A stretch of 52,476 nucleotides of DNA from Fonticula alba ATCC 38817 (lineage: Eukaryota; Protista; Nucleariida): NCBI GenBank assembly GCA_000388065.2, contig KB932203.1, one strand, 5' to 3'. Below, piece by piece: positions 13,151 through 47,920 of the stretch. Position 1 is the first letter of the stretch; each line of letters begins with the position of its first letter. The notes below the pieces were generated by a model that had not been told where the DNA came from, did no database searches, and worked only from the letters and a program-made list of their open reading frames with translations. The translations under genes and the position numbers were made by a program.

Positions 13151-13194
<44 letters not shown>

Positions 13195-13583: not shown

Positions 13584-13589
13584 TATAAA
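13584..13589 (+). promoter_or_regulatory. Candidate TATA box upstream of the Kazal gene
   Basis: TATAAA follows a (CT)n tract 170 nt upstream of ATG 13754, in very GC-rich DNA. No TSS data. Confidence 0.3.
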
Positions 13590-13753
13590 GGCCAGCGGGC
13601 TCGGGTGAGCGCAGCCTCCAACATCGACGGCACCCTCCAAGCTTTCCCCTTTCCCCCCTAGCCTGATCTCCCCCGCCCCTCGCCCCCTCCCGTCCGCCCG
13701 GCCGCTTTCCCCATCCCCTCGCCGCTGCGTCCTCTCGCACGCCTTCCCATACC

Positions 13754-14330: not shown

Positions 14331-14393
<63 letters not shown>

Positions 14394-20221: not shown

Positions 20222-20711
20222 GGCCGCGCGCCTCCCGCCGTCGGCGCCGCCGCCGCCACTTCCATCTTCCCCTGTGCCCCGGGGGCCCGTCTCCAAAGCC
20301 CCTTTATAGAGGGAGCCGGGCTCCCCGGCGCACGCACCTGTCCAAACACGGAGATAAAAGGACGGAGTCTAAGGAGGGTATATTTCGTTCTAACGTGGCC
20401 GAGGCCGCGAAGCAGGGAGGGGCGAGGGGGGAGGCAAACCAAAAGAGGGAGAGGCCGAGGGAGGGAGAGAGAGAGAGAAGGAGGCAGGGAGAAAGAGAGA
20501 GAGAGAGGGAATAGTGGGAGAGGCACAGGCCGTACACGCGCGCGCGGCACATGCCAAAAGCATGCACACTATGTGCTGGCACATGGCGCACGGCCGCGCA
20601 CGGCCAAGGCCACACGTAGACCCACGCGAGGGACGTCCCCCGGCCGCGAGACACGAGGCGGCTGTCGCTCGCGCGGCCGGTCCGGCTCCCGCCCCCGGCC
20701 CGGACGAACGC

Positions 20712-22533
20712 CTACGGCCCGGTCAGCGGAAGAACCGCCTCCAGCTTGGCCTCGCCACCTTTCTCCAAATTCCACGTGTACTGGGCCCAGATCCCCTCGC
20801 CGGTGAGGACAATCACCGAGTCCGAGTGCGTGCCGACGGCCACCTTGCTCGAGTGCAAGTCCGCCATGAGGCCACCCCCGGCGGCGCCGATGGCCATGCC
20901 TGCATCACCATCGGTCGGCTTCAACAACGACATCTGCCCGCGCAGATCCCCGGCGAAGGCGCACGTGCAGATGACCGCCCCGCGGTTGCGCGGCCGGGAG
21001 TCCGTGCCGATCCCCGCCGCCGCCAGCCGCTGGCGGACCGACTGGAAGCTGGCCGGCAAGTCCGCCAGCACCGGCGCCTTGAACCAGGAAAAGGACCAGC
21101 TCGACCGGAAGTAACTGGCCCCGATCCAGGACAGGCCGCTGGTGCGGTTGGACAGCCGGAAGGCAAAGTCCTGGGTCAGCCCCTCCAAGCCGGAGGCCGA
21201 TGAGGAGCCCGCCGACCCGCCGGCGCCCGGCGCGGCCGCCCCGGCGCCCGGCGCCCCGGCAGCCGCACTGGACGACGCGCCCGCGGCCCCGGCCGACCCC
21301 GGTGCCTCGGCCGACCCCGGCGCCTGGACCAGCACCGACCACACATTGTAAATGTGCACCGTGCCCCGGTCGCTGGACACCAGGAGCTGATCACCGCCCG
21401 GGCTGAAGCGCAGGCACTGGATGACCGCCCCCTCGGAGCCACGGCGGAATTCCAGCAGCTTCTTCGGCCGCAAGTGCAAGCTCGATGCACCGAGCGTCGC
21501 GACGGTCGACGGGGCCCCATCCGACGACAACGACGCGGCACCCACCGGGTCCGGGGCGCCGGGGGTGGCGGTGGCGGCGACGGCCGCCGCCGCGGCCGCC
21601 ATCGCAACCGTCGCCGAGCTGGCCGCCTGGTCGCCAGCCAGCTCCGCCGGCCGCCGCAGGCCGATGATCTCCCGGTGAATGGCCGAGAGATCCCAAATCC
21701 GGATGAGGGTGCCCCGCTCGGAGCAGGTGGCCAGCAGCGAGCCATCCTGGCTGAAGGCCATGGCGCGGATGGGCGAATCGTGCGCCCGGAAGCTGAGAAT
21801 CTCCTGCGGCACGGGGTATGTGACCGTCTCCCCGGGCAGGGTCCCGGGCAGGTGGAAGAGCGTGATGGCCCCGGGGGCCGGCCAGTCGCCGGTACCGGCC
21901 GGGGGGAAGGCCAGCAGCGTGATGCTCGACATGTCGGAGGTCAAGGCCACGCCGTTGCGCGAGTGCCGCGCCGTCGGGAAGGAGGCCAGCTTCTCCAGCG
22001 AGGCGGTCAGCGAGTGGATGCGCACGTCGGTCTCCGTCGAGCACACCAGGTGGTACCGCGACAGATGCAGCGAGGCCACCGGCTCGGGCAGGTCCACGCT
22101 CGACACCAGGGCCCCATGGCCCTGGTCGGCCGCCTGGTCATAGAGATTCACGCGTGTCGAGGGGAAGGTGGCCGAGTCGCCCACGAAGGCCAGCAGGCTG
22201 TGCCGGTAGATTTGCCCGATCAGCGAGACATTGGCCCCGGGGATGAGGCACTCCACCCGCTGCCGAAGCGGCCGCGTGTTGAACAGGGACAGGCCATTTT
22301 GGTAGCCGATCGCGAAGCCGGAGGCGTCCTACGGCATCCGCGCGAGACCCGAACCCCGGGGCCGGCACGCGGCAGGGGGGCCGAGATGTCAGAGGCAAGC
22401 CCGGCATGCTGCGTGGGGCGGAGCGAGGGGAGGGGAGGGGGGGGGGCGCCGGGGGAACAGGCACCAGGAGGAACACCCTTGGGCCACATACCTGGTTGAA
22501 GTCCGCGAAGAGGATTTCCCCGAGTTCCTCCAT
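20712..22533 (-). CDS. PROPPIN WD40 phosphoinositide-binding autophagy protein (Atg18/Hsv2/WIPI3-4 family), 552 aa
   Basis: Exon 22533-22492 (MEELGEILFADFNQ) joins 22328-20712 (DASGFAIGYQNGLSLFNTRPL..., AHDSPIRAMAFSQDGSLLATCSERGTLIRIW, EFRRG, SSDRGTVHIY, RSSWSF). N-terminus and SxWSF motif resemble WIPI3/4/Hsv2. Confidence 0.9.
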
Positions 22534-23117
22534 GGCGCTGGGAGAGACGGGCGAAGAGGCGGGGCGGGCGAAGGGGGGAAAGGGCAAGAGGGATGGCGAG
22601 AATGTGCTCGGGGGGGGGGGGGGGGGGGAGGGCCGAAGGATGCCTTCGCGCACGGTGGGGTTGTTGGCAACCGCCTCGGTAGCATTCCCCAGGAATGGGC
22701 CGCACTTTTCACCCTGGCGCCAGGGGTACAGGGACGCCCGGGCGCCCGGGGGCGTGCGCCCGGGAGCGTGGATGGCCGGGGCTCTGACATGCATAAGACA
22801 CACGCACACACACGCAGAAACGCACACACACACATACACACATACACACGTACACCCGCAGAACACAATGCTAGCGCGCCAACACCATCCCCAACTCGCC
22901 CTCAGCCCCGTGAGTCGCCCTCCGGCAAGTCACGCCACAAAGTCAGCCGCCGGTTGATCTCCCCCGGGAGTACCAACGATCGTCCACTTTTGTCGATCTC
23001 CCCTCGCGATCCCAGTCACCGGCGCCGGCACACCGGGCCATTGTCCTCCTGCGCTGTTCCCCTTCCCCTTTCCCTCCGCTCGCGCCCTCTCCCCCCCCCC
23101 CGCCCCCCCCTGTTACG

Positions 23118-24431
23118 ATGTCCAATCGCCGCCAGAAGGTATGGCTCCTGCATGCCCCGCCCCCTCCCCAGCTCGGGGCCTCCCCTTCCTTCCTGCTGTC
23201 CCTTCCTGTTCCTCCCCCCCTCCCGTCAGCGGGCTCTATTCCTGTCCCCCGGTGTTCCTGTGTCCCCCTCCTTCGGCCGGTCCCCCATCTGACACCCCCT
23301 CTCTCCGTCGCGCTCTCTCTCTCCATCCCAGGGGGTCATCCTCGAACGCGGAATCGTGTACGGCAATTCGGCCACCCTCCTGGCCCGACCCACCGACAAC
23401 GGCCACACACACAAGTGGACGGTTTACGTGCGCGGCCTCTATGGCGAAGACATTTCCTACTTCGTCCGCAAGATCAGCTTCAAGCTCCACGAGAGTTTCT
23501 CCCCCCAGACGCGTGGTGCGACCGGCCGAGCCCCATGCCCGATGCCCTTTGGCTGCCTCCTGCCCGAGCCCAACCGAACTCATGCCCCCCCCCCCCCCCC
23601 CCCCCCCTCCCTGGCGCCCGGCATGCCTGCCCACCCGCCAGTCGTCGACACACACCCCTTCGAGCTGACCGAGACCGGGTGGGGCGAGTTCGAAATCCAA
23701 ATCCGACTCTTCTTCCACGATCCGCACGAGAAGCCCGTGGTTCTGCTCCATCCCCTTCGCCTGTACCCGGTGGAGGGGATAACCACAGAGCGTGATGCCG
23801 GCAAGCTGGTCGTTGCCGAGCGCTACGACGAAGTGGTGCGCCTCCTCCCATGCCCGTCTTGGCTCCCGGTCCCGGTCCTCCCCCTCCCGATGCCTGGCCT
23901 GACTTGTCCTCCCCCTCGCCCCATGCCCAAGATCTTCAACGAGCCCACCCATGTGATGGCCAACCAGCTGGAGCTCGGCCCGCCGGCCGGCTACGACGCC
24001 ACCCCGACCGACTCCTCCAAGTACAGTGCGTGCACCCCCGGTCCTGAGCATCCCCCCTCCACACACACACACACGCGCACACGCGCGCACACACATAAAC
24101 ACACACATAAACACACACATATACACACACATATACACACACATATACACACACACATACACACACGCACACATACACACACGCACACATACACACACGC
24201 ACACATACGCGCACGCACGCGCACGCACGCGCACGTAGACTGACCCCGCCGGCCCCGGCTCCGAACACAGTTAGCGAAGTCGAAACCATCGAGCTCCGGC
24301 AGATCGCCGAGGCTGAGGCCGCCGTGTGCAAGCAAATCGAAGCCGCCCAGCAAAAGCTCGCCCAGCTGGACCAGGGACTGCTGGTCCTCAACCGCGAGGT
24401 GGCCGAGATGGAGGCCGAGCGGGCCCGGTAG
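23118..24431 (+). CDS. YAF9: YEATS-domain protein Yaf9/GAS41 (NuA4/SWR1 subunit), multi-exon
   Basis: MSNRRQK|GVILERGIVYGNSA..GHTHKWTVYVRG..DISYFVRKISFKLHESF, PFELTETGWGEFEIQIRLFF, VVAERYDEV|IFNEPT, then a C-terminal coiled coil ending at TAG 24429-24431. Confidence 0.93.
24060..24235. repeat. Compound (CA)n/(CATA)/(CG) microsatellite in a Yaf9 intron
   Basis: Seen directly. Confidence 0.85.
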
Positions 24432-24616
24432 CGCAAAACACACATGTACCCTCCTCTCCCACCACAAGAATGCCTCGGGCTGGCCCGGCACCGAAATACA
24501 ACTCCCCTCTGGGTCAGACGTGCTTTCTTTTTTCTCCATTTGCCTGGGCCCACCGGCACCAAGGGCCACCTCTCCCAACGGGACACGCACAGACACACCG
24601 GGGCCCGGGACACGGC

Positions 24617-26389
24617 TCAGCACATCCGAAGCAGATCCGGCCGGACCATGACCGGCTTGCGGCCATCGCCGAAGGCCGGCTGCTGGCCGTCAGCCGGGCC
24701 GGCGCCAATGGCCCCGGTGGCCGCACGCAGCGCCCGGCCAGTGCCCTCCTCGTCGAAGGGGAAAGCCTGCGTCGGGAGGACGACAATGCGCCGGCGCACG
24801 GCCAGCGCAATCGAGTCGAGGGCCCGCTGCCGGGTGGCCAAGTCGGCATTGGCGGCCCAGCGCGTCAGCCAGAAGCCCCGCGCCGCGATGTCATTGAAGA
24901 TGAAGGGGCCGGCCCCGACCGACAGCGGCGCTCGGGCCAAGCCCCCGTACGTGACCACCGACGCGCCGGGGCGCAGGTGCCGCGAAAGCTCCGACCCATG
25001 GACCCCGCACACGGCATTGAAGGCCACATGCGCTTCGATGGCACCCTCGCCGGCTCGGAGGGCCTCCACCTGCTCGGCCGACGCCGGACGGCCCAGGGTC
25101 TCGGCCACCCCGCGCAGGAGGCGGCCACTGGACGGGTGCGTGACCACCGGCCGGTCATTCAGCGCGGCGGCCAGTGCCGCCTCCGGGTCGGCGGCCGGGC
25201 CAGCACCAGCGCCACCGGCTCCGCCCGAGCCCCGGGCCCCACGCCCGCGCGCCTTCAGCTCCTCCTCCGTCAAGACCACCGTGGCTCCGAAGCGCAGGAG
25301 CCGCCGGCGCAGCGCCTCCGTCTCATCGGCCGTGCCCCGGGCGCGGATCACATTCACCGTGTGATGCCCCAGCGCCTGGGCCAGCTGGATGACCGCCAGG
25401 CCGACGGCACTGTTGGCGGCATTCTGCAAGATGACCATGCCCGGCTGGACCCCGCCCCCGGGCAGGAAGTCCGCCAACAGCCGATACGCCGTCAGCGGGT
25501 TGATGGACATGGTGGCCGCCTCGGCCGGGGTCAAGTTGCTTTCGCCATTCAGGTAGCACCCGGTGCGCTGGACCAGCAGCAAGTCCCGGCAGTCATCCAC
25601 CGCCAGGACCGACCGCCAGGTCCCGGCCCCGGCCTGCGGGAGGACCACCCAGTCGCCGACCGCCAGGCCGACCGGTGACCGGGGAGCCGCCGCGCCCCCC
25701 GGGCCGCCGGCCTCGGCATCGGCGCCCTGGTCCGGCAGGAGGAGTCGGTCGCTGGCGGCCGCGGCCGCGGCCATCACCGCGTCCAGGCCGCCCGGGCCGC
25801 CGCCGCCCACGGCCCCGTCATCCGCCTGCAGCAGGGCCCGGTGGAGCTCGGCCCCGCGCACATCGGCCCCCGGGTCCACGCGCGATCCCAGCCGCGGCCG
25901 CGGCGCGTCATACAGCAGCTCCCCGGCTTGGACTTCGGCCCCAAGCTCCACCACCTCGAAGACGCCCTCATTGCCGCCGATGGCCGGCAGGGCGCCCGGC
26001 CGGATGGGATACACCCCTTCGATGGTGTTGATGTCGGCCGGGTGGATGGGAGCCCCGACCAGGCGCAGCCGGGCCCCGCGCGGGCCTACCGGCTGGTCCT
26101 CCCAGTTGACGTGGAAGTTGTGAAACCTGCGTGTCCCAATGTGTGTGCGTGTGCGTGTGTGTGTGGGGGGGGGGGGTGATTGTCAGCGGCAGAGCGGGCG
26201 CGAGGGAGGACGACAGCATGCGACCCATCGGTGGCACCCGCATGGGCAGGGGACGCACTTGAGCACCTCGGTCGGCTGACCGTGCCGGGCGAAGGCCAGT
26301 GCGGCCGAGGCCACGGACCGGGTGACGATGGAGGCCGGCCGGGAAGCAGCATGCTGGGCCCGGACAGAGAGCCGACTGGCGACGAACAT
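24617..26389 (-). CDS. MECR: Mitochondrial trans-2-enoyl-thioester reductase (MECR/Etr1), 2 exons
   Basis: Exon 26389-26259 (presequence-like, FARHGQPTEVLK) joins 26126-24617: APIHPADINTIEGVYP, GGNEGV, AATMSINPLTAYRLL, ILQNAANSAVGLAVIQLA, NAVCG, VVTYGG, FIFNDIAARGFW. Confidence 0.93.
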
Positions 26390-26897
26390 TCGAGGCGCGG
26401 GGAGGGGCGAAAAAAGAAAAAAAAGACGGGCGAGGGGGGACGGTGGGTTTGTGCAAAAGAGGAGGAGGCCGCAATGGGACGGGGCGTATGAGGCGAGTGC
26501 GCGTGTGCGTGTGTGTGTGTGTGTGTAGTTGCGATTGGCTGCGTGCAGGTGTATATTCCGCGGGGTCTAGGTGAAAGAATGGTAACCCGCATTTATGTCG
26601 TGTACATGTGTGGATGGGGAAGGGGGGGGGGGGGCCATGTCGCGCGGCGCGCTCGTTCTCCGAGGCAGCGGAGATCGGGTTGAGGAGCGGGCCGGGGCGG
26701 GGGGCATCGAAGATCGGCGGACAGGCCGCGCACAGGGGACGCCGGCGTCACCGGCGCCGAGGCGGCCCCCCCCCCCAGGCACGGGCGGCCCCCGGTGGCG
26801 GCTGCGTCGTCTAGGGCATGACCACATGCGTTGGCAATTGACACACCGCGGGATCCGGCCCCCCCCCCCCCCGCCTGGCGCTCCCAGGGACCCAAGT

Positions 26898-27689
26898 CTA
26901 TTCCTGCCGCTCGGGGGCCGGCGCGGCGGCCGCCGGAGTGGCCGCCGGAGTGGCCGCCGGCCCACCGGCGGCATACGACCGGGAAAGGGCACGGCGGTGA
27001 CGAGCCAACAGCCGGGCGGCCATGGCCGAGGACATGCCCGTGGCCGGGGCCGCATCGGCCGGCTCCGGCGAGGCCGTCGCCCCCGCGGAGGCCGCTGCGG
27101 CCTCCGGCTCGGCTGCCACATGGGCCGCCGGGGTGGCCGCCTGCTCGGCGGCCGGCCGCCCGGCCGGCAGGGCCCCCACCTTGGCCGACAGCTGGAAGAG
27201 CACGCCCGCGCGATTGTGCATCTGGATGATGTCCGACCGCTGGCGATCCAGCTGGGCCTCCATGTCCAGGTAGTCCTGGCGCCGGGCCTCGAAGATGCGC
27301 AGCATCTGCGGCACGATCGACCGCTCGGCAAAGGCCATGGCAGTCGGCAGGCCCTGGTCAAAGAAAACCGCCCCAATCAGGGCCTTCACCGCGTCCGAGA
27401 TGATGGTCCGGTCGGCGGACCAGGGCCCGGCCTCGGCGCGCTGCGCCTGGATCCCCTCCTGCAGCACGGCCGCCGGCATGTCGAAGAGGAAGGCATCATG
27501 CTTGAAGACCAGGGCCCGGTCCAGGCGCAGGAGGCGCCCGACCCGCGTCGGGATCCGGCTCGATTCCAGCGCGGTCAGCTGCTGCCGCAGGTCCTCCAGC
27601 TAGGCGGAGGTGGGCCCCGACATGGAAGGAGCGAGGCGCATGGTGCCCATGTGAATGTGCGCGTGTGCGCAAATGTAAAAATTCACATG

Positions 27690-27771
<82 letters not shown>

Positions 27772-28279
27772 CGAGTGGGCACGCGAGTGCATGTGGTGCG
27801 TGTGTGCGTGTGTGTGTGCGTGCGAGTGCATGTGGTGCGTGTGTCAGTATTGCCCGGTCCTTACGGCTGGCTGGCGACCGGCGGCCCGGAGGACAAAGCT
27901 GTCCCCAGAACACGCGCAGAATAGGGGGGGGCGGCGGCGGCAGGCAGCCACGACGCGCCAGCACACATGCGCACCGGGATGGTAGGGTTGTGAGACATCA
28001 CAGCATAGAGAAGCGCCGAGCTGAGGATGGTCTGGCCCATCTCCACGTGTCTGCCGCGGGCGAGCGGGGAAGGCGCCAAGGAAGGAGGGACCAGACAAAG
28101 GCCACCACCGCCCGAGGGAGGAAAGCCGAGTAAGACCACAGACGGGTGCACAAGCGAACCGGCGTCCACCAGGGCCCGGCGACAGTCGACAGAGGTGAGT
28201 GCCCGATGGAAAGCCGCGGCCAGGCGGGGTGTGTGGCAGGGGCTGGTCGGGGCCCGGGGGCCGCGCCTCGCTGCTGTGT

Positions 28280-28370
<91 letters not shown>

Positions 28371-29932
28371 CGGAATGACCGCGACTCGGGGGTTCATGCG
28401 CACCGGAGGTTGGAGATGCTCGACTGGGTGAGGGCAGCCGTGCCGGCCTCGGTGCTGGTCAAATGCGCAACCCGGTCATGCGGGATGAACACCTGCCGCA
28501 GGAGATTCGGCTCCTTGAAGGAAAGCTGCAGGGGGGGGAAAGTAAGAAAAGGAAAGAAGCACCGGGAGAAAGGGCCCAAAAAGGGGACGCCCACGCGAGT
28601 CAGCCCACGCCCAGATGCCGCCTCGGCCGGCTCGCCGCGGCGACGGCACGCACCTCAAGCTCCTCGGCCACCCGACGGACATTCCGATCGAAGTGCGGCG
28701 GGAGGTTCAGGAAGGCAAAGGTCTGGTCGGTCAGGCGCCAGTGCACCGGCACCCGTGGCCGGAGGAGGCTCACGTCGCGGGTCTTGAGCGTGCTGTCGGA
28801 CAGGAGCGGCGCCTGGAAGGGGCCGGTCGAGGGCCCGGCCGCCGTGGCGGCCCCCGGCGCGGCGGCCTTGGACCGGGCGGCCGGCTCGGGCGCCTGCCCA
28901 CCCGGCCCCAGCCCGAAGATGCCATCCTCATCCTTCAGATGCCGCGAGTACTGGCGCTGCTCGTCCAGCTGCGAGCGGGCCTCGGCGATGGAGATGATCG
29001 ACGAGGCAAAGGTCGAGGCCACCGGCGCCGGGACATCCGGCCGCCGCCCGGTCAGCGCGTGGGCCAAAAACCGATAGTAGTCCACCGGGTCGGCCAGCGC
29101 CGCGGCCTGCTGCCGGAGCAGCAGCGGCAAATTCGGCGACACCGATGTCACGCGCTCGAAGAAGCCGCGCAGCTCCCGCGCCACGGCCCCCGCATCCGAC
29201 AGGTCCTCCAACACCGGCAGCGGGGGCAGGCTATCGGCCGGCGGGAAGCCCGGAGGCAGGGACACCTGGGTCAGCACCGGGGCCGAGGCCGCCCCCGGGG
29301 CCGCGGCCACCGCCCCGGCCACGCCGGCAACCGCGCCAGCAGCAGTGGCGGCGCCAGTCGCAGCCCTGCCGGTGCCAGCCCCGCCAGCACGCCTGCCACC
29401 AGCCTCCGACCGGGAGCCCGGGGCCGCATCCCGACGCGGCGGCGGATCCCCACCGCGCTTCGGCAGCCAGCCCTCCGGCCGGACGGCCGACAGGGCCGAC
29501 GATCCGAGCAAACTGGCGCTGCTGCTGTCCAGGAAGGAGGCCCGCCGCCGCGGGGTCGACCCCTCGGCCGCCGACGGGTGGTAAAGCGGATCCCGGCGCC
29601 GGGCCTCGGCCGCCGCCAGCTCCCGCTCCCGGCGCCGGCGCTGCTTGTCGGCCATCTTCGTGGGGAGATCCCGCTTCCGGGGGGGAGGGCCGGCCGCCGG
29701 GGAGGCTTCCTCGGCCGGCCGGCCGGCCTCCTCGCGGCGAGTCTTCCGCCGCCGGGGAGTCGGCTCCACCGAGTCGGCCACCGGGCGCGAGGGGAAATTG
29801 CTGTCGCCCACGCTCTGGGACACCTGGCGCACATGCCTCAGCGTGTTGTTGGCATCCTCCACCAGCTTGCGCTCCAGATCGGCCAGCCACTCGGGAGACC
29901 CGATGTGCTCGTCGTCATCGGCCGCGTTGCTT

Positions 29933-29966
<34 letters not shown>

Positions 29967-30093
29967 CATCGCGGGCCGCTGCCGCCATAGACCGACAGGC
30001 ATCGGCGCCGTGCCGCATCGGGGCACCCGCCGGACGGGCCGCCACCATGGGGCCCGCTCGCCGGAGGACCGTGGCCGAAAGCGAGGAGAGCAT
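26898..30093 (-). CDS. Mitochondrial-targeted RNase III-fold protein with degenerate active site (mitoribosomal mL57/mL44-like), 4 exons
   Basis: Exons 30093-28654, 28525-28404, 28050-~27974, 27599-26898. N-terminus [14 protein letters not shown] is presequence-like. [13 protein letters not shown]; [13 protein letters not shown] (cf. NERLEFLGD); [10 protein letters not shown]; [16 protein letters not shown] (cf. DxxEALIGAIYLDxG). No dsRBD seen. Confidence 0.7.
27689..27842. repeat. (TG)n microsatellite with imperfect extension, intronic
   Basis: A long pure tg run followed by two near-copies of gcgagtg(g)catgtggtgcgtgtg. Confidence 0.85.
28280..28368. repeat. Poly-G homopolymer of about 89 nt, intronic
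   Basis: Seen directly. Similar runs occur at 13152-13192, 14310-14389 and 36096-36184. Confidence 0.8.
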
Positions 30094-30819
30094 GTGGGTT
30101 GGGGAGGGGGAGACGAGGTAGCTGGGCAGGGGGGCGGGGGGAGAAACGGCAAAAAGGCGGCGCGAGGAGACTTCCAGGTGCAACGGCAGAGGGGGGGGAA
30201 AGCAAGAGGGGGGGAGAGGGAGAAAGAGGGAGAGAGAGAGAGAGAGAGGGAGAGAGAGAGAGGGAGAGAGGGGGATTGTTTCGGCCTTCTCGATGGCCTG
30301 GGGAACACGGCCCGCCGCCCTGGTATCAGAAAGGGGACCGCCTCATGGCGGCGCAAGGTGGCGCACGTGTTCCCGGCGTCACGCTCACACATGCCAACGA
30401 ACAAGCGGGCGGTCCCGGACGCCCGGCGCGCGCCGGGCGACTGTCCGGCCTCGTCCCCCCCCCCCCCCCCGGCCCCCGGCCCCGGTGCCCCTCGCTGGGA
30501 TGGAAAAGAAAAAATGGGACCCAGGGGTGCACGGCACGGGATGACGCGCGAGGAGAATCGAGGGTGTGAATGTATTTTCGGGCGTGAACGCGCGGCGGTC
30601 AGAGGGGGGAGGATGAAGCGGAGTCCCGGCGAGATGGCCGGCGCGGGCAGGCACAGGCCCCCCCCGGGCCGTCCCCGGCAGGAGAAGACGAGGCATGCCG
30701 CATGGGCCACCGGCGCAAATGCAAGCCCACGCGTGTGAATATGTGTCTCCATGCAGGGGGGGGAGGGATGTGCGCGCGTACGCGCCCGGTAGCGCATCTC
30801 CTCGCGGGCCCCCCCCCTT

Positions 30820-31096
30820 CTAGGACTCCATCGACAGCGAGAGGGAGGACGACCGAGGGGTACGGGTGTCCATGAACCGGAAAACAAAGTTCGACACATA
30901 GCCAATCATCACCGGCAGGCCCAGCAGGAGCGGCACAAAGAAGGGCACCGCCGGCGGGAAGGGGGGCTGCAGGCGGAGGATGGCGTCCACCCGGCGCATC
31001 TGCTCGATGCCGTACCGCGCAGCCAGTGACCGGGCGCGAGCTTCGTACATGGTTTCCAGGCGGGTGTAGGGAGACTGTGCGCATGCGTCCGGGCGG

Positions 31097-31138
<42 letters not shown>

Positions 31139-32679
31139 AAGGGAGAAACAGACAGAAGTGCGCGTGCAAAGGACCGGCAAACTGCGCGCCCATGCGCGTG
31201 CGCGGGCATTTGGGGAGGAAAAAAACCCACCGCAGCAAGATCCCCCGCCCCACCCCGCCCCCTTGGATACCGGCCGCCAGGCATGCCCTTCAGGAGAGCG
31301 AGCCACCGAGCAAGACACGCACCCGGCGGAAACCCACCGACTGGTAGGCCATCAGCTCGGACACGAGCGGGCTGTTCGGATGCTTGGTCTCCTCCAGCTG
31401 GATGACGATGATGCCGAAGATGGAGTGCTTCATGCAGGAGGTCCACGTGTGGCAATGCTGGGACTGGTAGAGTCTAAACAGGATGTTGATCAGCTCGTCG
31501 CTGCTCTCATCCAGCCCCGGCATGCTCAGGACACGTCGATCGATGACGCTGAACATGGACCCGGTGATCCGGTCCAGCACCATGGCGATCATCAAGTACG
31601 AGCAATAGAGGGTCGTGTAGAATTGGATGTCTGTGCATGCGTCGTACGGGGGAGGGGGGGGGAGAGCGCGCGCGCGCGCGAGGTGGGAAAGGGAGACAGA
31701 GAGTGCGGAGGGAGGAAGGGGGGGGGGGGGGGGCGTGCGTCGGTGAGTTGACAGGTGTGTGCGTGCGCGCGCCAAAAGACAATCCGGTCCTTGGCGAGAT
31801 GCGGCGCTCAGGGCGAGACGACGCGAGCCGGGAAAAGGGACGGGAAGAACGCACACCACATGGGCAGGGGCGCCGGCTTCGGCAAAGCCTGGTCCATGTC
31901 CACCTCGGCATCCTTCAGCAGCTGCAGCAGGTCCGAACTGGGCCCGGCCAGCGGCTCCGACGACACCGGCGCAGGCGTCGGCGACGCCGTCATCGGAGAG
32001 GAGGCGGAGGACCCCAATGACGAGGTCGATGACGAGGCCGACATCGACCGCTCCATCGCCAGCGTCGGGCCCCCATGCTCCAGGGCGCTGGACATGGCGA
32101 ACTTCGTCAGGTACGAGGCATTCATGATGGACAGGTCCCGACGGCCGCGCCCGCGCCGACTGACCACGCCCCCATGGTCGGGAGCCGCCACGGCGCTCGA
32201 CAGGGCCGCCTGGCTGGCCATGCCCTCGGCCGCCGGGCGGACCGCGGTGGTCGTCGCCGGCGCCACGTCCGGGACCTCACCATCCTCGGCGCCGGTGCCG
32301 GTGTCGGGCTCGATCTCGGCCCCGGCCGCCGGCCCCTGCATGAGGGCTTGGGCCTCGGTGCCAGCCTCGGCCACAGGAGGCTGGGGATCATCCTCGGCCC
32401 GGGTCCCGGGCAGGCGACACCGGAGCAAGCATGTCCGACGCACGTTGAAGGGCCGCATGAGGCCCAACTCAAAGTGGCCCGCAAAGGACCGCCCTTGCGA
32501 GGCATCCTGGCGCTCGGTCGACATATCCTCCAGCGAGGAGTCCTCCGTGGCGGCCGCCAACTCCAAGGACCGACCCCAGATCAAGCGCCCTGCTTGCAGG
32601 TAGAGCTGCGAACCGGGCGGACAGACAAAAAAGGGGAGCCCGCCAGCCAGCGGCAATAGAGAGAGGGAGAGAGGGGAGG

Positions 32680-32715
<36 letters not shown>

Positions 32716-34208
32716 ATGAGGAAAGAGTCAATACAGGCAGATCCCAGCGCCGGGTGGGCCCAGGAGAGGAGCCAAGGGCAAAGGAAGGCGAAGCCAGGGA
32801 CAACGAAGGAACCACAGCAACAGGCGCACCTTTCGCGCCTCGGCAATGTGCCCGGCAAAGGCCAGCCGGTCGGCGTGCTCGCGGATCAGCCGCGCCTTCC
32901 GCGTATTGCTGGCCATCTGCGGCGACAGGGACAGGGTCTTCACCAGCACCAGGACCTTCACCAGGGTCATCAGGCCAAACCACCGGAAGAAGCCCAAGGT
33001 CACATAGAGGACGGAACACAATGGCCCATAGGCGAAGGAGACAAACGCCGACAGGATCTTCGCCCGGGTGGACGCAAAGACCTCGGTGGAAATGATCGAT
33101 GGCAGGGACCCCTCCAGCGTGGCGGCCGCCATGGCCGATGCCATGTCCCCCGCCTCGGGCGGGGTGTAGTTCGGAAGCGGCATCAGCAGCAACACCACCG
33201 ACACCAAGACACAGACACTCAGCGCCCCGTCGATGGCGAAGAAGGACGGAGACCGGCGCTTCCGCGGGTTGATCTCGGCCAACGGCAGGCCGGCCCCGCC
33301 GTCCGGGAGATGCTCCCCCGCCACGGCCGGGACCGGGCCGCCGGCATCCGGCGCAGCCCCCTCGCCACCGGCCACCGGCCCATCGGCCAGGGGCCCATCG
33401 CCGGCGAGGACACCGGGGGCGCCGGCCAGGTCGGCCGTGGCCGGGGCCTGCGCCGGTGCCGGGAGCGCCAGCACCGGGGCTGCTTCGGCCACGGCCGGGG
33501 CCCGGTCGCCGGGCATGGTGCCCTGCCCCGGCCGGGGGGCCGAGCCACCGGCACCCGACCGCAAATGATGCGGCTGCGGCTGGAGGAAGTGCCGAGGCGC
33601 CCCCGGAGGAGGAGCTGGCCCCCATGGCTTCGGCTGCGTGGCGGCCCTGCCGCCCTCCCGGTACGAGGGGGAATAGTGCGACGGGTAGAACCCATCCACC
33701 GGGCCGTCCTGCCCCGGCCCCGCTGGGTAGTAAAACTCCCCCCCGGGACCGGGGGCAAAGGGCGCCTGGTGCGCCGCCGCCGCCGGGGAGCCACCATACT
33801 GGCCCCCGCTGTGGTAGAGGCTGCCATGGGGTGGGAGGGGCCCCGGTGCCGAGCCCCGTGAATGATATGCCGGAGGCGCCTGTCGCCGAGGAGACTCGCC
33901 GCCTCCCACCCCGGGATAGTATGGGCCTCCGGCCGCCAGGCCGGCAGGCGGCAGTCGAGCCCCCTCGCCCCGGGGGTAGCCCCCGCCCGAGGTGGACAGA
34001 CCATCGTCGCTGGCCGGCGCCGCTGGCAGATACCACCCCCGAGGAGGCGGGCCGCCAGGAGGACCCGGCGACATGCCATCCGGCACCGACATCCGGTACC
34101 CATGGCTTGGTGGTCCATAGTACCGGCCGTCGGCCAGCGAGTCGACACCATACCCATCGCCACCCGCCAGTGGGTACTGATGGTGACGGTGGTAATCATA
34201 ATAGGGCG

Positions 34209-34241
<33 letters not shown>

Positions 34242-34591
34242 AGCCGGGCTGGTGATAATCGGAAGGGAATGGAGCGAGCGGACCGCCCCCCGGGAGATAG
34301 CCACCACTGGTCGCCGGGGGGGCGATCAAGTGTGGCGGCAGTGGCGCACCGTCCGGTCGGTGTGCGTACCTCCGAGACGCCTCTATGGTGGCAGCGGGCA
34401 GGGGGAAAGACGGAGCCCGCGAGCCAGAAGCCGCGACAAAAGGTCAGCACCACTGTGTGGCAGGGGGAAGGCCGGCGAAAGGGACAGAACCCGACCCATG
34501 CGGCGGCCTCCGTCGTACCATCATCACCGGCCAGACCGGCCGGTGTCACAAAGGAAGAGGAGGCGCCCCCCGGCGGCCCCCGACGCATGAA

Positions 34592-34622
<31 letters not shown>

Positions 34623-36110
34623 TGTGGGGGAGGCTGCTGGGAGGGGGGCTCATGGCGAAAAAAATGCCGGTCCTGAGGCGACAGCCCAGAAGGCGGGGGT
34701 CCTGACGGGTCGGACCGGACCGGGCTGGCCCCGGGCCCGGGGGCGTCACCAGCGAATCCACCTGCCGGTGGCCCGCCCGGATAGTGTCCAGCGAATGGCC
34801 CGGAGAGGCCACCGGCCGGGTGCCGGGATGGATACGCCTGCTGCTGCTGCTGCTGCCGGCCAACCGGAGCATGAGACGAATGGTGGTGATGATGGTGGTA
34901 CGGGTGGGCGGCGGCCGCGGCCGCGGCGCTCGCGGCTCCGGGGGGATTGCCCCCGGCGCCGGCCGCCGCCGCCGCCGCCGCTTGATCGGCCTCACTCAAC
35001 GGCGTGTTCAGCCCATTGGACGAACCGGATGGCGGCGCGCTCGGCACCCCACCCGACCCGAAGGAAGCCGACGAAGAAGCGGCCCCCGGGGCCGAGGAGA
35101 AGGACCCCGCACTCGCAGGGGGAGCCTCATCGCCGGGCGAGGAAAAGGGCCCGGCCGAGCCATCCGGCGGCGAGTTGACCATCACCGAGCCACCGAGGTC
35201 GGGCGCTGGTACCGGCCCCGGTAACCCCCCGGCCGGCCCATGCATCCCATGCGCATGGCCGCCCCCGCCGAGGGACCCCGAGCCAGGGGCCCCGGCCGGC
35301 GGCACCGAGCGCGACATTTGCGAATAGGCCCCGCTGTGGCCCGGCTGCGAGTAGGCATGCCCCGGCGGAGGCAGGGGCTGGCCCCCGGACGGGGTGGGCC
35401 CCCTGGCCGAGGAGCCCCCCGACGAGCCGGGGGTCGTGTGCCCGGAAGACCCGCCCGCCCCGGGCGAGGGGGATGGCCCATCAGCAGGCCCGGGGCCGCC
35501 CTCCGAGGCCGGGCCACCGTCCGACGCGCCGGGCCCGGAGGCGGCCGCCCGCTCCAGCTGCGCAATGCGATCCTGCAACTGGCGGACCTTCAGCCGGAGC
35601 TCCAGATTCGACCGGTGCAACGACCGGCACGAGCTGGTCAGGGTGTCGACAAAGGTGACACTGCGCGAGAGGATGGCCGCCTTGGAGGGCTTGCGATCCC
35701 CCCGCAGGCCGGCCTCCAGCCCGGTGATTTCGAGCAGATCGCTCTGTGCATCCGGAAGCAGCCCGTACAGCTGGTTGATGGCCGAGTTGATGCTTTGCTG
35801 CCGGCGCCGCTCCGACACATTGTGGTTGTGCTGCTTCAGAAGCTCAATCGCATCGGCATCCAGGGCCTGGCCGGCCGACAGGGCTGCCGCGGCCTCGGCT
35901 GCCGCGGCCTCGCGCCGAATCGACCTACACACGAGCAGGAAGAGGACGCAGGAGGAGGGAGGCATGGAGAGGGCAAGCACGGGGAGAGGCATTGGGGCAG
36001 GGGGGCAGGGGGGGGGGCGGGGGCGCGGCGATGAGCGGGGAAAAACAGAAACAAAGAAACAACAACAACGGACGCCAGGGGGGTGAGAAAAGGGAGGGGG
36101 GGGGGGGGGG

Positions 36111-36186
<76 letters not shown>

Positions 36187-38358
36187 GGAAGCCGGAGCCG
36201 GACACACAGACACACAGACACACAGCAACCGGATGCCATGGAGTTAGGACATGCAAGGCGCAGGAAGGGGGCCAAAGAGGAGAGGGGGCAGGGGGGGGGA
36301 AGTCAGGATACAGGGCACGCACGCCAGCTTACGCGACCCGATGGACGCGCCGCCGGCCAGGTCGTCCAGGTCCGGCGAGGGGGACCCGCCACTGTTGCGC
36401 GAAGAATGCCGCTTGTGCCGGGACACGGCCCGAAGCCCCGACGCGGGGTCATCCTCGCCCTCGTCGCTGGAGCTGTCGTCCGAGGACTGGGACTCGGCCT
36501 CGGGCGGCTGGTCCGGCTCCTCGGCCGCGGCGGCCGCCGCACGCGCACGCACTGGGCCCGCCGCCGCCGCCGACGCCGACGCCGCCGTCACCGGCACCGC
36601 CGTCACTTCTGATGGATCGCCCCCGGCCGCGGCGTGGCGCTTGCGCGGCGGCAAGGTCGGCTCTGTGGCCGCGGCCACGGGCTTGCCACTGTCAGGCACC
36701 GCCGGGGCCGCGTGCGACACGCACGACTGGTCCAGTCGCCTGGACAGGGCCTGGATGGAGCTCTCGTCCCCGGCCACCGCCGGGTCCGGCTTGACGGCCA
36801 CCGCCGGCATGGCCGCCGCCCCATGCTTGGCAAGGAAGGCCCCGGAATCGGAGTAGGTGGCGGGGAAGCCGCCGGCCACCCCGGTCGCCGTGGCCGCCAC
36901 CGCCGCCGGGTCAAAGTCCGGCGAGGAGGCCGACGACGAGCTAGACGACGACGACGACGACGAGGTGGCCGCCAGGTGAGGGTGGTGGTGAGGGTGGTGG
37001 TAGTGCGGCTGCTGATGCTGATGCTGGTGCTGCTGCTGCTGCTGGTGGTGGGGGGGAGGCTGGTGCTGCTGCTGCTGCTGCTGGTATTGCTGCTGATGCT
37101 GCTGATGCTGCTGATGCTGCTGCTGATACTGCTGATGCTGCTGGCCTGGGCCACCCTGTCCAGGAGGCGGGCCCAGCGGCCGGCCACCCGGCGGGAAGTA
37201 CCGCTGCCCGGCGGGCGGCTGCTCGGCATGGCCCCCGGGAGATGAGTGGTACGTGGGCGGGGAACTCCAGGCCCCGGGGGGCGGCGGCCCGGCCGGGCCC
37301 TGCCCCGGGGCCCCGACCGGCCCATGGCCGTGCGAATGGCCGTGCGAATGGCCGACACTTGCCGAGGCCCCTGGCCCGGGGCCACCGGGGTGGAAGTCCC
37401 CGGGGCCACTGCCCGGGCCCGGAGCACCGCCCCCATCGCCCGGATGGCGTGGCCCACCATCATACACCGGGCCACGCGCACCATAGGAATAGTGGCGGCC
37501 CTCGGCCGAGTGGCCATACGTGCCGGGGTGTGCCGAGGGATCCGGCCCAGGGCCCCCGACTCCCGGCCGGCCAGCCAGATGACCCGGCACAGGGCCATAG
37601 TATGCATCGGCGGAGCCCGGCCCGCCGGAAGCCGCGGCATTGTGGAAGCCCGCATGCGGCGGGTGCCCCTCGGTCGAAATGCTGTACCCATCGCGCATGG
37701 GCCCGGCCCCAGGACCGGGGCCGCCGCCACCGACAGCCGGACCCGAGGGCGACGATGACGATGACGAGCAAGAGGAAGAGGAGGCCAGCCCGGAGCTGAC
37801 CGTGTCGGCATGTGCCTGGTCCGTCAGCAAGCCGCTGCCGGAGCTGGCGATCGGCTGCGGGTCGAAAGTGCCACGACCCGGGTGGGGCTGCGCCTGTCCC
37901 GGCGCCTGGAGCTGTTGCGACTGCGAGGACGGCTCGGCCGGGAAGCCGGGGTGGCGCGGGTGGTGGTGCGCCGGCGGGGCCATGTGCCCGCCGGTCGGCG
38001 GCAGGAAGTGCGCCGGGCCCAGCGCCGCCACGCGGTATTCCCCCCGCTGGGGCTGGTACGGATGGTGCGTGGCCGAGCTCGACCCCGGCGGGTGAGAGTA
38101 GGAGTGACTGGAGGGAGGGTGCGGAGGCATGGGCCCGGGCCCATGCCCCGTCGGGTGGTGGAGGTGGTGATCCGGCGACTCGTTGAAGAAGTTCGAATCC
38201 CCCAAGAACACCGGGTCAAAGTCGCCGATGCTGTGGCTGACCGAACTCCCGGGCGGCGGGGCCGCACCGGTGGCATACGCCAGCGTCAAGTAGGCATTGT
38301 CATTGCCGGCTGCCGGGGGGAAAAAGTGCTCAGGCTCGAAGGAGTTGGGATAGGCCAT
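30820..38358 (-). CDS. SREBP-like membrane-tethered bHLH-Zip transcription factor, 6 exons, ~2097 aa
   Basis: Exons 38358-36323, 35924-34519, 34382-32830, 32605-31855, 31630-31338, 31074-30820 total 6294 nt with all phases compatible and GT-AG introns. bHLH-Zip HNHNVSERRRQQSINSAINQLYGLL..KPSKAAILSRSVTFVDTL..LHRSNLELRLKV. TM1 LSVCVLVSVVLLLMPL; TM2 ..LMTLVKVLVLVKTL; then REHADRLAFAGHIAEARK|LYLQAGRLIWGRSL, resembling the recalled SREBP C-terminal start RKQADLDLARGDFAAA..LGRAL. Confidence 0.75.
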
Positions 38359-40581
38359 TGGGTGGGACGACGGCCGCGGGGCCTCTTCTTCGTGTCACGG
38401 CAGAAGCCGAGACAAGGGACACTGGAAAAAGGGAGGGGGGAGGGGGGGGACACACACACACACACGGGCGCGCGCGCGCGCGGGGTCCCGGCGCAGTTTG
38501 CGTCAGCCGGCGACGGCCACCAGAGGCAACCCCGGAGAGCGATGCCCGGGCAGGGAGAGGGGGAACGGGCAGGCCGCCGGCACGCGGTGCGTATGACCGA
38601 GCGCGGCAGCCAGATGCGCGGAGGGCAGATCGCGCACGGCCGACGGGGCACAAGACAGGGAGCCGGCTGGCCGAGGGGGTGACACGACCGAGAGTGAGGG
38701 AGGGAAAGGCGGAGACAAAGGAAGGGAGGGAGGGAGGGGGGAGGAGGAGGGGGGCTGCTGGCCCCCTGCGGCGCGCGACCGCGACCGGAGCCTCGGCGCA
38801 CTTCTATCCCGTGCGTGCCCCCGGCGCCCCGGCCATCGATGGATCTCGCCGGTCTGCCTGGGGCGGTGCCGGCGGCCCGGGCCGGCGCGAGTCCACACCG
38901 GCAAGGCTCGCCCGGCTTTTGCCGCCAGCCGCGCGCCCCCGCCGGGACCACCGCCCGTGCCCCCTCCCGCGGCCCCCCGCCCAGGGACGCAGCCCCGGGG
39001 AGGGGGTGTGCCAACGCGCGCAGGCCCGCGCCCGGCTGCATGCGCCCCCGCGCCAGGGCCGTTGTTTACCGTGCTGGCGCATGCGCGCACACGGCCTGCC
39101 TCGAGCGAGGGCCGCCCAAGCGCGGGGCCCGCCCCCCGGCCATCGTTCGTCAGCCAGCCCGATGTACCCCCCCCCCCCCGGCCTTCGGGAAGTGCAGGAG
39201 AAATCGACGGATCTAGTCGTCGGTGGCCCTCCCCGGCCGGGGGCGCCGGGAAAGGTAGAATGTTCTCCCCCCAGTCCGCCGGCAGAGAGACGGCCGCCCC
39301 CGGTCCCCCGGGCCACGAACCGGCCCCCCCCCCCCCTGCCCGCCCCCTGGACCGCACCCGGGCTGCCGGCTCTTCCCCGGAAACACACGTCCTGCCGGTT
39401 GCCGGGTTCCGGCCTGCCTGCCAAGTGGGGAGCACGCGCCGCACCCCCCCCCCCCCCCCGGGAGAGTGTAACATGCGAAAACGTGCGCCGCCCCCGCCCT
39501 CGCCGTCGCCCGGTCGGCGAACTCCTAACGCATCACAATGCGTCCATGCGCGTCTCCCCCTGCAAGCGCATGTGCACACATGCGTCGCCGCCTCTTGCTA
39601 ACACCCGCGCGCGCGCGCGTTCTCCACACGACACGTTAATTGATCGGCGCATCGATTGCCGCCCCGCCGGCTGGACATCACCCAAGCAGGGAGGAAGCCA
39701 CCGTGCCGGCCCCCGCCCGCCGGCCCCCGCCCGCCCGCCCGCCGAGCACCACGCCACCATGCCCGACCCATACCACGCCACAAATCATCCCGGCCCCCGC
39801 CTGCCCGGGTCCATATGGCGAGGGGCACCGGCCGGGCGCCCGTGCGCGACCCAGCCCCCCTCCCCGGGCCCCCCCCCGGCCCCCGGGCCCCGGTTGGCGC
39901 CGATCCCGCCCCAGGCGAGATCTTGCGGACCATATGAAATGGGCTCGATCAGCTGTGGCGCCCGGGCGAGTCCCAACGATTCGGGCATGTGACCGCCGCG
40001 TCGGTCCCGGCAGGGTCCGGCGCACGGAAATCCGCCCGACCGTCCGGCAAAAAGAGCGTGCGAGCGTGCGAGTGTGTGTGTGTGTGTGTGTACCTGGTTG
40101 CGCGCGTGCCGGAGACGAGCATGCGTCGGGGAAAAGAAAGAAAACAAAAACACCCTATGTTGCATCACCCACCGGAGATACCGCGCCCGCAGCAGGGTGG
40201 ATTTTCCGCCCACACACATATGCTCTGACTGAGAGAGGGAGAGAGGGCGGGGGACACCGCGCACCGGGCCACATTCTATTCGAGCCCCCCCTTTTTTCTG
40301 GCCTCTAGCCACGGCGCTGCCGGGACACCCCCACATGCCCGGGGGGGGGGGGGNNNNNNNNNNGGGGGGGGGGGGGGGGGGGAGGCGGATGGCGGCGTGA
40401 GGCGATGCCACCCCAGGGCAGGGGGGACGGCGACCCTGCCCACCAAGGGCGGCGCCGGGCACTTGGACTTCCACCGGCGGCGGCCCCCTGCTGTGGACAC
40501 GCTGCCGCCCTTTGGCCCCTCTCGCCGCGCCAGGCGCGCGCACACCTCCCTCCCCGTCCCGCCCCCCACCCCCCGCCCCGC

Positions 40582-44182: not shown

Positions 44183-45305
44183 GGCAGGCAGGGGAGAGGG
44201 ATAGAGGGTAGCCAGGGGGCTGAGGAGGAGAGTGTGCGTGTGTGTGTGTGTATGTCAGGCGCGGGGCGAACACCCGACAGCCGGCGGCAGCGCGGCAAAA
44301 ATCCGCCCACACAGGCAAATGGCGTCTAGTTGGGCAGGCGGGCCGGATCGTGGGCGGGCTTTCTCACCGCGAAAAGCGCGACATCCCCCCGGCGTGGGAC
44401 GCGATGGTCCACGGAAGGGCGGGCGGGCGGGCGGGCGGGCGGGCAAGACACACCCCCCAAGGCCAATGCCCGGAGACGGCCCCGGAGCCAAGGCAAAGAC
44501 ACGGCCGGCGCGCAGGAGGGGCACAGCGCCGACAATAGCCCGCAAAGAAGCGAGGCATGCGGAAAACAACAACCCCCGAGAACGCCCCCCGGCGCCCGGG
44601 GGCCGCGGACGCAGGGCCGACGCATTGCCGCCCGGGCGGTGTCAGCCCGCTAACAGCCCCCCCCCCCCCGCCCCCCCGAGCAAGAGACAGCACGAGAGCC
44701 AGCAGCCGGGGGGAGGGCGGGGGGGCTGCTGGCTGGCAGGCAGGCAGGCAGGCAGGCAGGAAAGCGGGCCGGGGCGGGCACCCCGGCAACGCCCTCCCCC
44801 GGGCATGGTGAGCGGAACAAGGCCGGGGGAATGCGCCAGTTGGAGGGTCGCGTGATCCGCCGAGTGGGCACGTGCGGCACATCGTGGCGGTGCTCCCTCG
44901 CGCCGCGGGGGGCCGTCCTCGCTGCCGGGCCGCGGGAGAGAGAGAGAGATCACCCCCTGGGCCGGGGGGGAGGGCCGGCACGCGCCCGGGGAAAGGGGGA
45001 GGGGGCGGGGGCGCGCGGAAGAACGCCACACCACGCGGACGGGACCGCTTCGCGGAGAGTGTATGCCCCGGCGCCCCCCCCCTCCCCCCCCGCGCACTGG
45101 GCGCGGAGGGAGGGGGCGGAGCAGCGCGAGCACGAGCCGACCACAATCCGGCAGCGGCGCGCCATTTTTCGGGACCCAGCGGCGGGCCGGTGGCATTCGT
45201 CACCACAACAGCGCCGCCCTCCCCCCCCCCCTCCCTCCCCTTCCGCCGCTCGCCCTCCCTCTCCTCCCGCCCTCTCTCCCTCTCGCCCTCCGTCCCAGTG
45301 TAACC

Positions 45306-46072
45306 ATGGCCAAGAGTATTCGCTCGAAGAGCAAGCGCGCCTTCCGCCGCATCCGCGCCAAGAACATCCACGGCCCGATCGAGCACCAGAGGTTCGTCCC
45401 TTGCCCGCCTGCCGCTTCCTCCTCCCTCTCGCTCTCGCGCTCTCCCTCACCGCCTGGACTCGCCTTCGCCGGCTTCTGTCCCGCTTTTTGGTTGTCTCGG
45501 CCCCCGCCCACCCTCACACCGCCTGCTCCCTGCCTCTCTCTCTCTCTCCCCGCCCCCCCCCCCCCTGCCCGTGTTCCACGCTCGCACCCTCGGCACAGCC
45601 TCATGCGCATTGCCGCCAAGCTCGGCACCGCCGACCCCGCGGACGCCCCCCCCGAGGAGCCCAAGCGCTTCTCTTTCACCGCGCCCAAGGTGCGTCACTT
45701 GGCGCCCCTCCCCTGCCGCCGAGCTGCCCTCGGGCCCCTGCCCTCATGCACCCCCCTCTGGTTCTCAACTGACCCCATGCGTCTTCGCCCCTTCACCCCT
45801 CTTTCACGCGCGCGCACACACACACACACACACAGAGCCCGAACGACCCGCCCCCTCAGGAGATTGGCGCCAACAAGTTCGAGAACGACAAGCGCCTGGA
45901 CTCCGAGTTCATCGCCCGCCGCCAGCAGGCCGTCGAGCGTGACCGCGCCGAGTACGAGGAGCGCATTGCCAAGCGCGGCCCCCGCCTCACCCCGGCCAAG
46001 CCCTCCACCATCAAGAAGCACCGCGCCAGCAAGTACAAGCGCATGGCCAGTGTCCAGAGCAAGCGCTTCTAA
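45306..46072 (+). CDS. LLPH/LAP18/YBL028C (DUF2423)-like small basic nucleolar pre-60S protein, 3 exons, 129 aa
   Basis: Exons 45306-45391, 45599-45689, 45860-46072 are phase-compatible: MAKSIRSKSKRAFRRIRAKNIHGPIEHQSLMRIAAKL... with a basic C-terminal tail. Matches the recalled MAKS(L/I/V)R(S/A) family N-terminus. Confidence 0.78.
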
Positions 46073-46832
46073 GAACACCCGAGCAAGAGAAGATGGGTCC
46101 GAGCAGAGCATGCGCGCGCGGCGCGCCCATGCATCCCCCGCGCACATACACATACATGCACACACACACACACAGTCGCACGCCAGCCGGAGCCGCGACC
46201 GGCCGGCCCTCCGTGCGGCAAGCCGACGGAACCTTTCCCCCCCCCCCCTCCCTCATGCGCCCCGGCGCCGCCACGCCACACCGGGCATTGTATTTTTTAG
46301 TGTTTCGCCCTCCACATCCTCCGCCCTCTCCCGCCATGCTCCTCCTCTCTTTCCCTGCGCCCCCTTCCCCACTACTCTCCGGCTGGACTGTCCTTGTGCC
46401 ACATCTTTATGTATCTTTTATACACATACACGAAATCCACCATATGCAGTCACACAGGTGTACCTCCTTCCTGCCATGGCCGCCCTCCGCCCTCCCCCTA
46501 CCTCCGGCCGCCGGGGGGGTCCCCAAGCGCGAGGGGACTCCCCCGAAGGAGGAGGCCCAGGAGCAAAGGCCACCGGGCTTCCGCCCAGCACAGCACCCCC
46601 TCATGTGTGGCCATGCAAGGCTAGAGTGTGTCTATTTCGTTTCGAGCAAAGGGATGGAGGTCAAAAAGCGGGGCCAGACGCGCCGTGCTTGGCCTCCCCT
46701 CTCCCCCCGCACGCACGCACGCATGCACGAAGGGAGCACACGGCCAGCAAGCACAAAAATGTCCTGTGGCGGCAACCAGACGGAGCAAAAGAGCCGGCAG
46801 GGGAGAAAGACCGGATACATCCGGCCCCCCTC

Positions 46833-47889: not shown

Positions 47890-47920
<31 letters not shown>

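Follow-up and report, generated by a model that had tools for sequence, protein, structure and literature searches.

A predicted membrane-tethered basic helix-loop-helix factor of SREBP-like layout in Fonticula alba

The stretch of DNA analysed here (hereafter the window) comprises 52,476 nucleotides (nt) of contig KB932203.1 from the slime mould Fonticula alba ATCC 38817 (GCA_000388065.2), and carries on its minus strand a six-exon gene running from 38358 to 30820. The gene is genuine, transcribed and spliced. Its product of 2102 amino acids (aa) is probably, with the reservations given below, a basic helix-loop-helix (bHLH)-leucine-zipper factor of SREBP-like layout, which would sit on an internal membrane and be released by proteolysis, and which might be a divergent paralogue of the SREBP family.

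Between 38358 and 30820, the minus strand contains four long overlapping open reading frames (ORFs). As the G+C content of this DNA is about 72%, long ORFs by themselves are of little meaning. When the exons were assembled from the sequence by script, they yielded a coding sequence of 6309 nt which stays in frame up to a single terminal stop, and all five introns proved to be of the GT-AG type with matching phases (Table 1). A first-pass annotation of the window had joined the four ORFs and two small exons through five GT-AG introns into a protein of about 2100 aa, and all of its joints are found both in the sequence and in RNA. The joint between the second and third ORF is also as it had described, with a phase 1 donor at 34518 (GATG/GTACGA), an acceptor at 34383 (CATAG/AG) and a CTGAC motif at 34447-34443. 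This donor joins the acceptor straight into the frame of the third ORF, and an extra tiny exon is unnecessary.

The RNA consisted of four small 2012 runs from one organism, and contigs of X1 and X2 were aligned to the window. The four runs contain 73% of the sampled words of 30700-36500, approximately the exonic share. At the predicted introns the contigs skip exactly 398, 136, 224 and 224 nt, bounded by CT..AC on the plus strand (that is, GT..AG on the minus strand), and depth within the introns is close to zero. Exons are joined in RNA at 36323/35924, 34519/34382, 32830/32605, 31855/31630 and 31323/31074, the first three being the junctions for which an RNA check had been proposed at the outset; these are spliced in the contigs of both X1 and X2. 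Exons 6, 5, 4 and 3 are covered by one contig (2882 nt in X1, 2930 nt in X2), which also extends past the stop, and exon 1 together with about 440 nt upstream has 95-98% of its sampled words in the same RNA contigs. The contigs break at two CAG repeats only (34202-34248 and 34585-34628), neither of which is crossed by any contig, and the 34519/34382 splice is carried by a 268-nt contig lying between both repeats. We infer one continuous transcript, since the frame is open, spliced contigs flank the CAG repeats and the public model is a single gene.

As for the public model, a WD40 ORF at a distance of 10 kb matches the NCBI protein H696_01834 of Fonticula alba with 100% identity, and the GenBank locus around H696_01834 is identical to window 10712-32533. 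In GenBank (GCA_000388065.2), one called gene ends exactly at window 30820; its product has 2102 residues and its Pfam record is HLH alone. The same length and the same stop mean that all six exons have already been joined publicly into one protein. The gene had been supposed to be hidden and perhaps split by automated annotation, and it is neither: it is already public, as a hypothetical protein. In the literature library searched, no paper names Fonticula along with SREBP.

Several features of the introns and the upstream region were also observed. On the coding strand, pyrimidines make up 60-81% of each of the five introns, and the donor begins with GTGCG in four of them; this looks like a house style of the introns of the Fonticula alba genome. 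Intron 1, a spliceosomal intron, contains an almost pure poly-C tract of about 90 nt (window 36100-36190, poly-G on the plus strand), and introns 3 and 5 contain (CT)n and (CA)n microsatellites (window 32656-32724 and 31081-31152). X12 and X13, which come from another organism, contributed few reads and these on poly-C/G tracts only; the X12 pile-up in the poly-C of intron 1 and at 31718-31733 is a mapping artefact and not evidence. Upstream of the ATG, window 38359-38800 is almost wholly present in the RNA contigs, as either a 5' untranslated region of at least 400 nt or an overlapping neighbouring transcript.

The DNA-binding part of the protein was recognised by Pfam as HLH (PF00010, E=3.8e-10) at aa 710-774, and heptad leucines follow, extending the zipper to about aa 805. 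This is a group-B bHLH-leucine zipper, as in SREBPs. Its matches in the PDB were MITF, HMS1, USF2, TFEB, SREBP-1a and Cbf1, the first five with phmmer scores of 21.5, 20.2, 19.2, 18.9 and 18.2 bits, respectively. The yeast SREBP-like HMS1 aligns well over both the long bHLH loop and the pattern K-x-x-K-A-A-I-L of helix 2. Neighbours of the bHLH piece in the ESM Atlas were generic fungal HLH clusters (top score 0.90), with no SREBP-named cluster among them, and a word-based homologue search with the bHLH region against 5.8 billion proteins returned nothing at E<=0.001 or E<=10. The bHLH is preceded by low-complexity sequence rich in P/A/G/S/H/Q (aa 1-690) and followed by a G/P/A/S-rich spacer (aa 811-1515), so that about 720 aa separate the zipper from the first putative transmembrane segment (TM1).

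The predicted membrane hairpin was delimited by Kyte-Doolittle hydropathy over 19-residue windows, for which the usual membrane cut-off is 1.6, and by AlphaFold2 (AF2) run without alignment on aa 1516-1665. TM1 consists of 23 consecutive apolar residues, and basic residues stand on both outer flanks of the hairpin, RKRRS (within RKRRSPS) just before TM1 and NTRKAR after the second segment (TM2). In the AF2 model of aa 1516-1665, a single long helix covers aa 1581-1664 at a predicted local distance difference test score (pLDDT) of 70-89, with a mean pLDDT of 65 for the piece; exon 5, treated in the same way, was modelled as all-helical at pLDDT 46. Taken together, these predictions suggest a two-helix hairpin with a short luminal loop and both ends in the cytosol, as in SREBPs. 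Among vertebrate HLH proteins, the pairing of HLH with membrane helices concerns about 1%, essentially SREBPs (PMC13294678). The order of parts expected from the first pass (low-complexity N-terminus, bHLH-zipper, very long spacer, two-helix hairpin, C-terminal region) was therefore borne out, by the Pfam HLH match and by a hairpin predicted from hydropathy. The loop had been given as about 55 aa and is shorter, about 37 aa according to hydropathy and the AF2 helices. A site for an S1P-type protease had also been suggested in it; the motif, RAKIL/KILS, is indeed present and is the sole candidate, but it lies at the TM2 boundary, fits the relaxed S1P motif only, and such a motif would be expected by chance in about half of loops of this size (a rough estimate, not a computed one). 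As for S2P, its cleavage determinants are DRSR before TM1 and Asn-Pro inside TM1 (PMC7981912). Both are absent here, as RKRRSPS precedes TM1 and there is no NP in aa 1528-1550.

The tail of about 470 aa begins with basic residues after aa 1633 and a helical stretch cut by intron 3, continues with an A/S/P-rich insert (aa 1741-1905) and closes with a hydrophobic, helical end (aa 1906-2102). Within this end lies a hydrophobic segment (aa 2060-2085), possibly another membrane helix, for which we know of no counterpart in SREBPs. Scans of JGI metagenomes with exon 5 and the TM piece gave zero relatives. Some matches to the tail and membrane region were rejected: PknB, a designed Kelch repeat and a K2P channel, found in the PDB with the pieces from TM1 onward, are due to chance; two repeat proteins found by phmmer with aa 1500-1665 had summed weak scores and were spurious on inspection; and TPR-like and nematode seven-transmembrane clusters of the ESM Atlas, found with the TM piece and exon 5, scored 0.63-0.75, below the useful level. 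DUF2014 is confined to Ascomycota (PMC3894159), and its absence from the tail is for this reason uninformative.

A number of observations weigh against a tethered, SREBP-derived factor. SREBPs are characterised by a Tyr in place of a conserved Arg in the basic region, which switches binding from the E-box to the sterol regulatory element (SRE) (PMC3894159). This Tyr is absent from the basic region HNVSERRRQQSIN; when aligned to HMS1 (HNIIEKKYRSNIN), the position is occupied by Arg, followed by Gln (ERRRQ). The bHLH as a whole appears no nearer to SREBP-1a than to MITF, USF or TFEB, and the gaps between the scores are too small to assign a family. From TM1 onward, Pfam, searched exon by exon at E<=1, gave no hit of any kind, and a PDB sequence search with four pieces at E<=10 gave no SREBP or Sre1. 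A phmmer search with aa 1500-1665 against 1.84 billion representatives found no SREBP; negatives for low-complexity sequence need care in this library, as the 2102-aa NCBI protein itself was not returned either, even though a sister collection includes the NCBI protein of the WD40 neighbour, and it may be clustered there under an unrelated representative. Confidence in the AF2 models of the pieces is low, and they would be too poor for a fold search. Finally, the 3' contig of exons 3-6 has a word depth of 72 in X1 and 56 in X2, as against 23-30 over exons 1-2, and this two- to threefold excess could indicate either 3' bias or a separate shorter transcript of the membrane and tail part.

The last two points bear on the possibility that the protein is a soluble nuclear bHLH factor, with its hydrophobic stretches being buried helices of a C-terminal domain or with the membrane part encoded by a separate 3' transcript. 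The hairpin topology is indeed a prediction, the models are weak, and the contigs break at the CAG repeats with the deeper coverage on the 3' side. However, 23 apolar residues in a row with a Kyte-Doolittle peak of 2.52, well above the cut-off, speak against a soluble protein, the 34519/34382 junction is spliced in RNA between both repeats, no stop interrupts the frame and the public annotation shows one gene. We therefore hold a soluble factor to be highly improbable. The opposite possibility, proposed by the first-pass annotation, is a full SREBP, in which the C-terminal domain would bind a SCAP homologue, transport from endoplasmic reticulum to Golgi would be controlled by sterol or oxygen, and S1P- and then S2P-type cleavage would free the bHLH. 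The order of parts is that of SREBP, the loop is of similar length, a Cys and prolines occur in or at the end of TM1, and an A/G/R/L-rich helical segment, which may resemble the one in SREBP, follows TM2. Several observations speak against this proposal. With Arg in place of Tyr, SRE binding would be unexpected (PMC3894159); TM1 lacks the S2P determinants (PMC7981912), and the relaxed KILS motif sits at the membrane edge. In the PDB sequence search no similarity of the tail to an SREBP or Sre1 chain was found, the TM region matched none among the 1.84 billion representatives, the Pfam record of the whole annotated product is HLH alone, and there is an additional hydrophobic segment near the C-terminus. 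Moreover, the release of SREBPs in fungi relies on the Dsc ligase and a rhomboid in place of S1P and S2P. A full SREBP with a SCAP-binding domain is thus unlikely in our opinion.

Alternatively, a MITF/USF-like group-B E-box factor might have gained a membrane anchor in the Fonticula lineage; it would not descend from SREBP and would be controlled by another signal. Ordinary E-box factors likewise have Arg where SREBPs have Tyr, which would fit such an origin, as would MITF being the top PDB match (by a small margin), the lack of detectable relatives of the tail and TM region among the 1.84 billion representatives and in metagenomes, and the third hydrophobic segment and 720-aa spacer, both unlike SREBP. 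On the other hand, the exact SREBP order of parts, including a two-helix hairpin with a short loop, would have to have evolved on two occasions, the bHLH aligns well with the SREBP-like HMS1 in its long loop and helix-2 pattern, and the bHLH score differences are too small to favour any one family. We give independent origin some weight as a minority possibility. It is also conceivable, though not probable, that Fonticula alba has a small lineage-specific set of membrane-tethered bHLH-zipper E-box factors, including this one, which would be without the SREBP Tyr, have tails unrelated to the SCAP-binding domain and respond to a non-sterol signal, perhaps one of the aggregative life cycle. Returning to the preferred explanation, a tethered and divergent SREBP-family paralogue, SREBPs are present in both animals and fungi (PMC3894159), and a holomycotan relative would thus be expected to have inherited one. 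Judging by the architecture, duplication of an opisthokont SREBP gene followed by divergence is the simplest account of its descent and possibly the correct one.

If so, the protein might operate as follows. The N-terminal part of about 1525 aa, including the DNA-binding domain, would face the cytosol, the hairpin of two membrane helices with its loop of about 37 aa would serve as the anchor, and the tail of about 470 aa would return to the cytosol, possibly dipping into the membrane again near its end. By analogy with SREBP, the tethered factor would be inactive and would be freed by proteolysis at or in the membrane, and the released N-terminal fragment of about 1500 aa would dimerise via the zipper and bind DNA. 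Owing to the Arg at the position of the SREBP Tyr, E-box-type sites would presumably be preferred over SREs. Should release proceed as in fungi, a Dsc ligase and a rhomboid would take the place of S1P and S2P. A link to sterols or to SCAP found no support in the tests made.

Compared with known systems, the protein shares its order of parts with the SREBP family (human SREBP-1/-2, Drosophila HLH106, S. pombe Sre1, A. fumigatus SrbA and C. neoformans Sre1). Common to both are an activation or low-complexity region at the N-terminus, a group-B bHLH-zipper with a long loop and similar helix-2 pattern, a two-helix hairpin with a short loop (predicted here), and a long C-terminal region on the same side as the N-terminus. 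It differs in having Arg-Gln where SREBPs have Tyr-Arg, in a TM1 without DRSR or Asn-Pro, and in a tail that shows no detectable similarity to SREBP tails and includes both an extensive low-complexity insert and a third hydrophobic segment. Its dimensions differ as well, since human SREBPs have roughly 100 aa from zipper to TM1, as against about 720 aa here, and SREBPs total about 900-1150 aa, as against 2102 aa. With MITF/TFE and USF (21.5, 18.9 and 19.2 bits), it shares the HN-x-x-ERRR basic region and the Arg at the E-box-reading position. Those proteins are soluble, nuclear or cytosolic, have no membrane helices and possess a shorter bHLH loop, whereas here strong hydrophobic segments follow downstream in the same spliced gene. 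In ATF6, the CREB3 family and MYRF, the same principle is found, in that cleavage liberates a DNA-binding domain stored at a membrane (PMC13294678), but their DNA-binding domains are of the basic leucine zipper or Ndt80 type, they span the membrane once, and there is no homology.

SREBP is the textbook example of a membrane-stored transcription factor, known from animals and fungi, and Fonticula belongs to the sister lineage of fungi. The gene described here encodes an SREBP-style, putatively membrane-tethered bHLH protein in which the basic region is of the E-box type, the spacer is very large and the tail is unrecognisable. An SREBP layout with such a basic region and tail would show diversification of this regulatory design, and the gene could bear on whether the Tyr and the SCAP link are ancestral or later additions. 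The practical value is limited, as the gene is already publicly annotated as a hypothetical protein and its function is only predicted.

Table 1. Features of the 2102-aa gene and its annotated neighbours (window positions)
Feature	Position	Strand	Description	Support
Exon 1	36323..38358	-	ATG at 38358; aa 1-679, last codon split; low-complexity P/A/G/S/H/Q-rich N-terminus	ORF and RNA
Intron 1	35925..36322	-	398 nt, GTGCGT..AG	skipped in X1 and X2 contigs, depth ~0
Exon 2	34519..35924	-	aa 679-1147; bHLH-zipper, then low-complexity spacer	
bHLH-leucine zipper	35546..35833	-	aa 710-805; basic region HNVSERRRQQSIN	
Intron 2	34383..34518	-	136 nt, GTACGA..AG, phase 1, CTGAC at 34447-34443	skipped in a 268-nt contig of X1 and of X2
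Exon 3	32830..34382	-	aa 1148-1665; remaining spacer, TM1, loop, TM2, first 30 aa past TM2	
TM1 (predicted)	33175..33243	-	aa 1528-1550, ends in MPLPN	Kyte-Doolittle peak 2.52; AF2 helix aa 1527-1547 (low confidence)
Presumed luminal loop	33058..33174	-	~37-39 aa (about aa 1551-1589), RAKIL/KILS at TM2 end	hydropathy and AF2 helices
TM2 (predicted; aa 1590-1613) and adjoining hydrophobic/amphipathic helix (aa 1614-1633)	32926..33057	-		Kyte-Doolittle 1.75-1.86
Intron 3	32606..32829	-	224 nt, GTGCGC..AG, (CT)n tract	skipped in 2882- and 2930-nt RNA contigs
Exon 4	31855..32605	-	aa 1666-1915; helical start, then A/S/P-rich low-complexity stretch	no relative in Pfam or PDB
Intron 4	31631..31854	-	224 nt, GTGCGT..AG	skipped in RNA contigs
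Exon 5	31323..31630	-	aa 1916-2018, hydrophobic and helical	RNA contig pieces span 31323-31630
Intron 5	31075..31322	-	248 nt, donor GTGCGT..AG, (CT)n/(CA)n tracts	RNA contigs join 31074 directly to 31323; depth 0 over 31088-31281
Exon 6	30820..31074	-	aa 2019-2102 and stop codon	annotated gene end = 30820
Third hydrophobic segment	30874..30951	-	aa 2060-2085, Pro-rich, 17 aa from C-terminus	Kyte-Doolittle peak 2.05
Neighbour	10712-12114		560-aa gene, cut by locus end	
Neighbour	13754-15389		Kazal-domain protein, 384 aa	
Neighbour	16058-20221		1210-aa protein, Pfam-hit-free	
Neighbour	20712-22533		WD40 protein H696_01834	
Neighbour	23118-24431		YEATS protein	
Neighbour	24617-26389		546-aa protein, faint ADH_zinc_N match	
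Neighbour	26898-30093		779-aa protein, faint RNase III match	

None of the annotated neighbours in 10712-30093 is evidently tied to sterol or SREBP pathways. Elsewhere in the window, an 834-aa ORF (45063-47567, plus strand) contains a YBL028C ribosome-biogenesis N-terminal domain (E=9e-7), and an ORF on the opposite strand (46833-48497, minus strand) has a Hira/TUP1-like match (E=2e-6). As these two ORFs overlap, at most one of them can be a real frame over the shared part.

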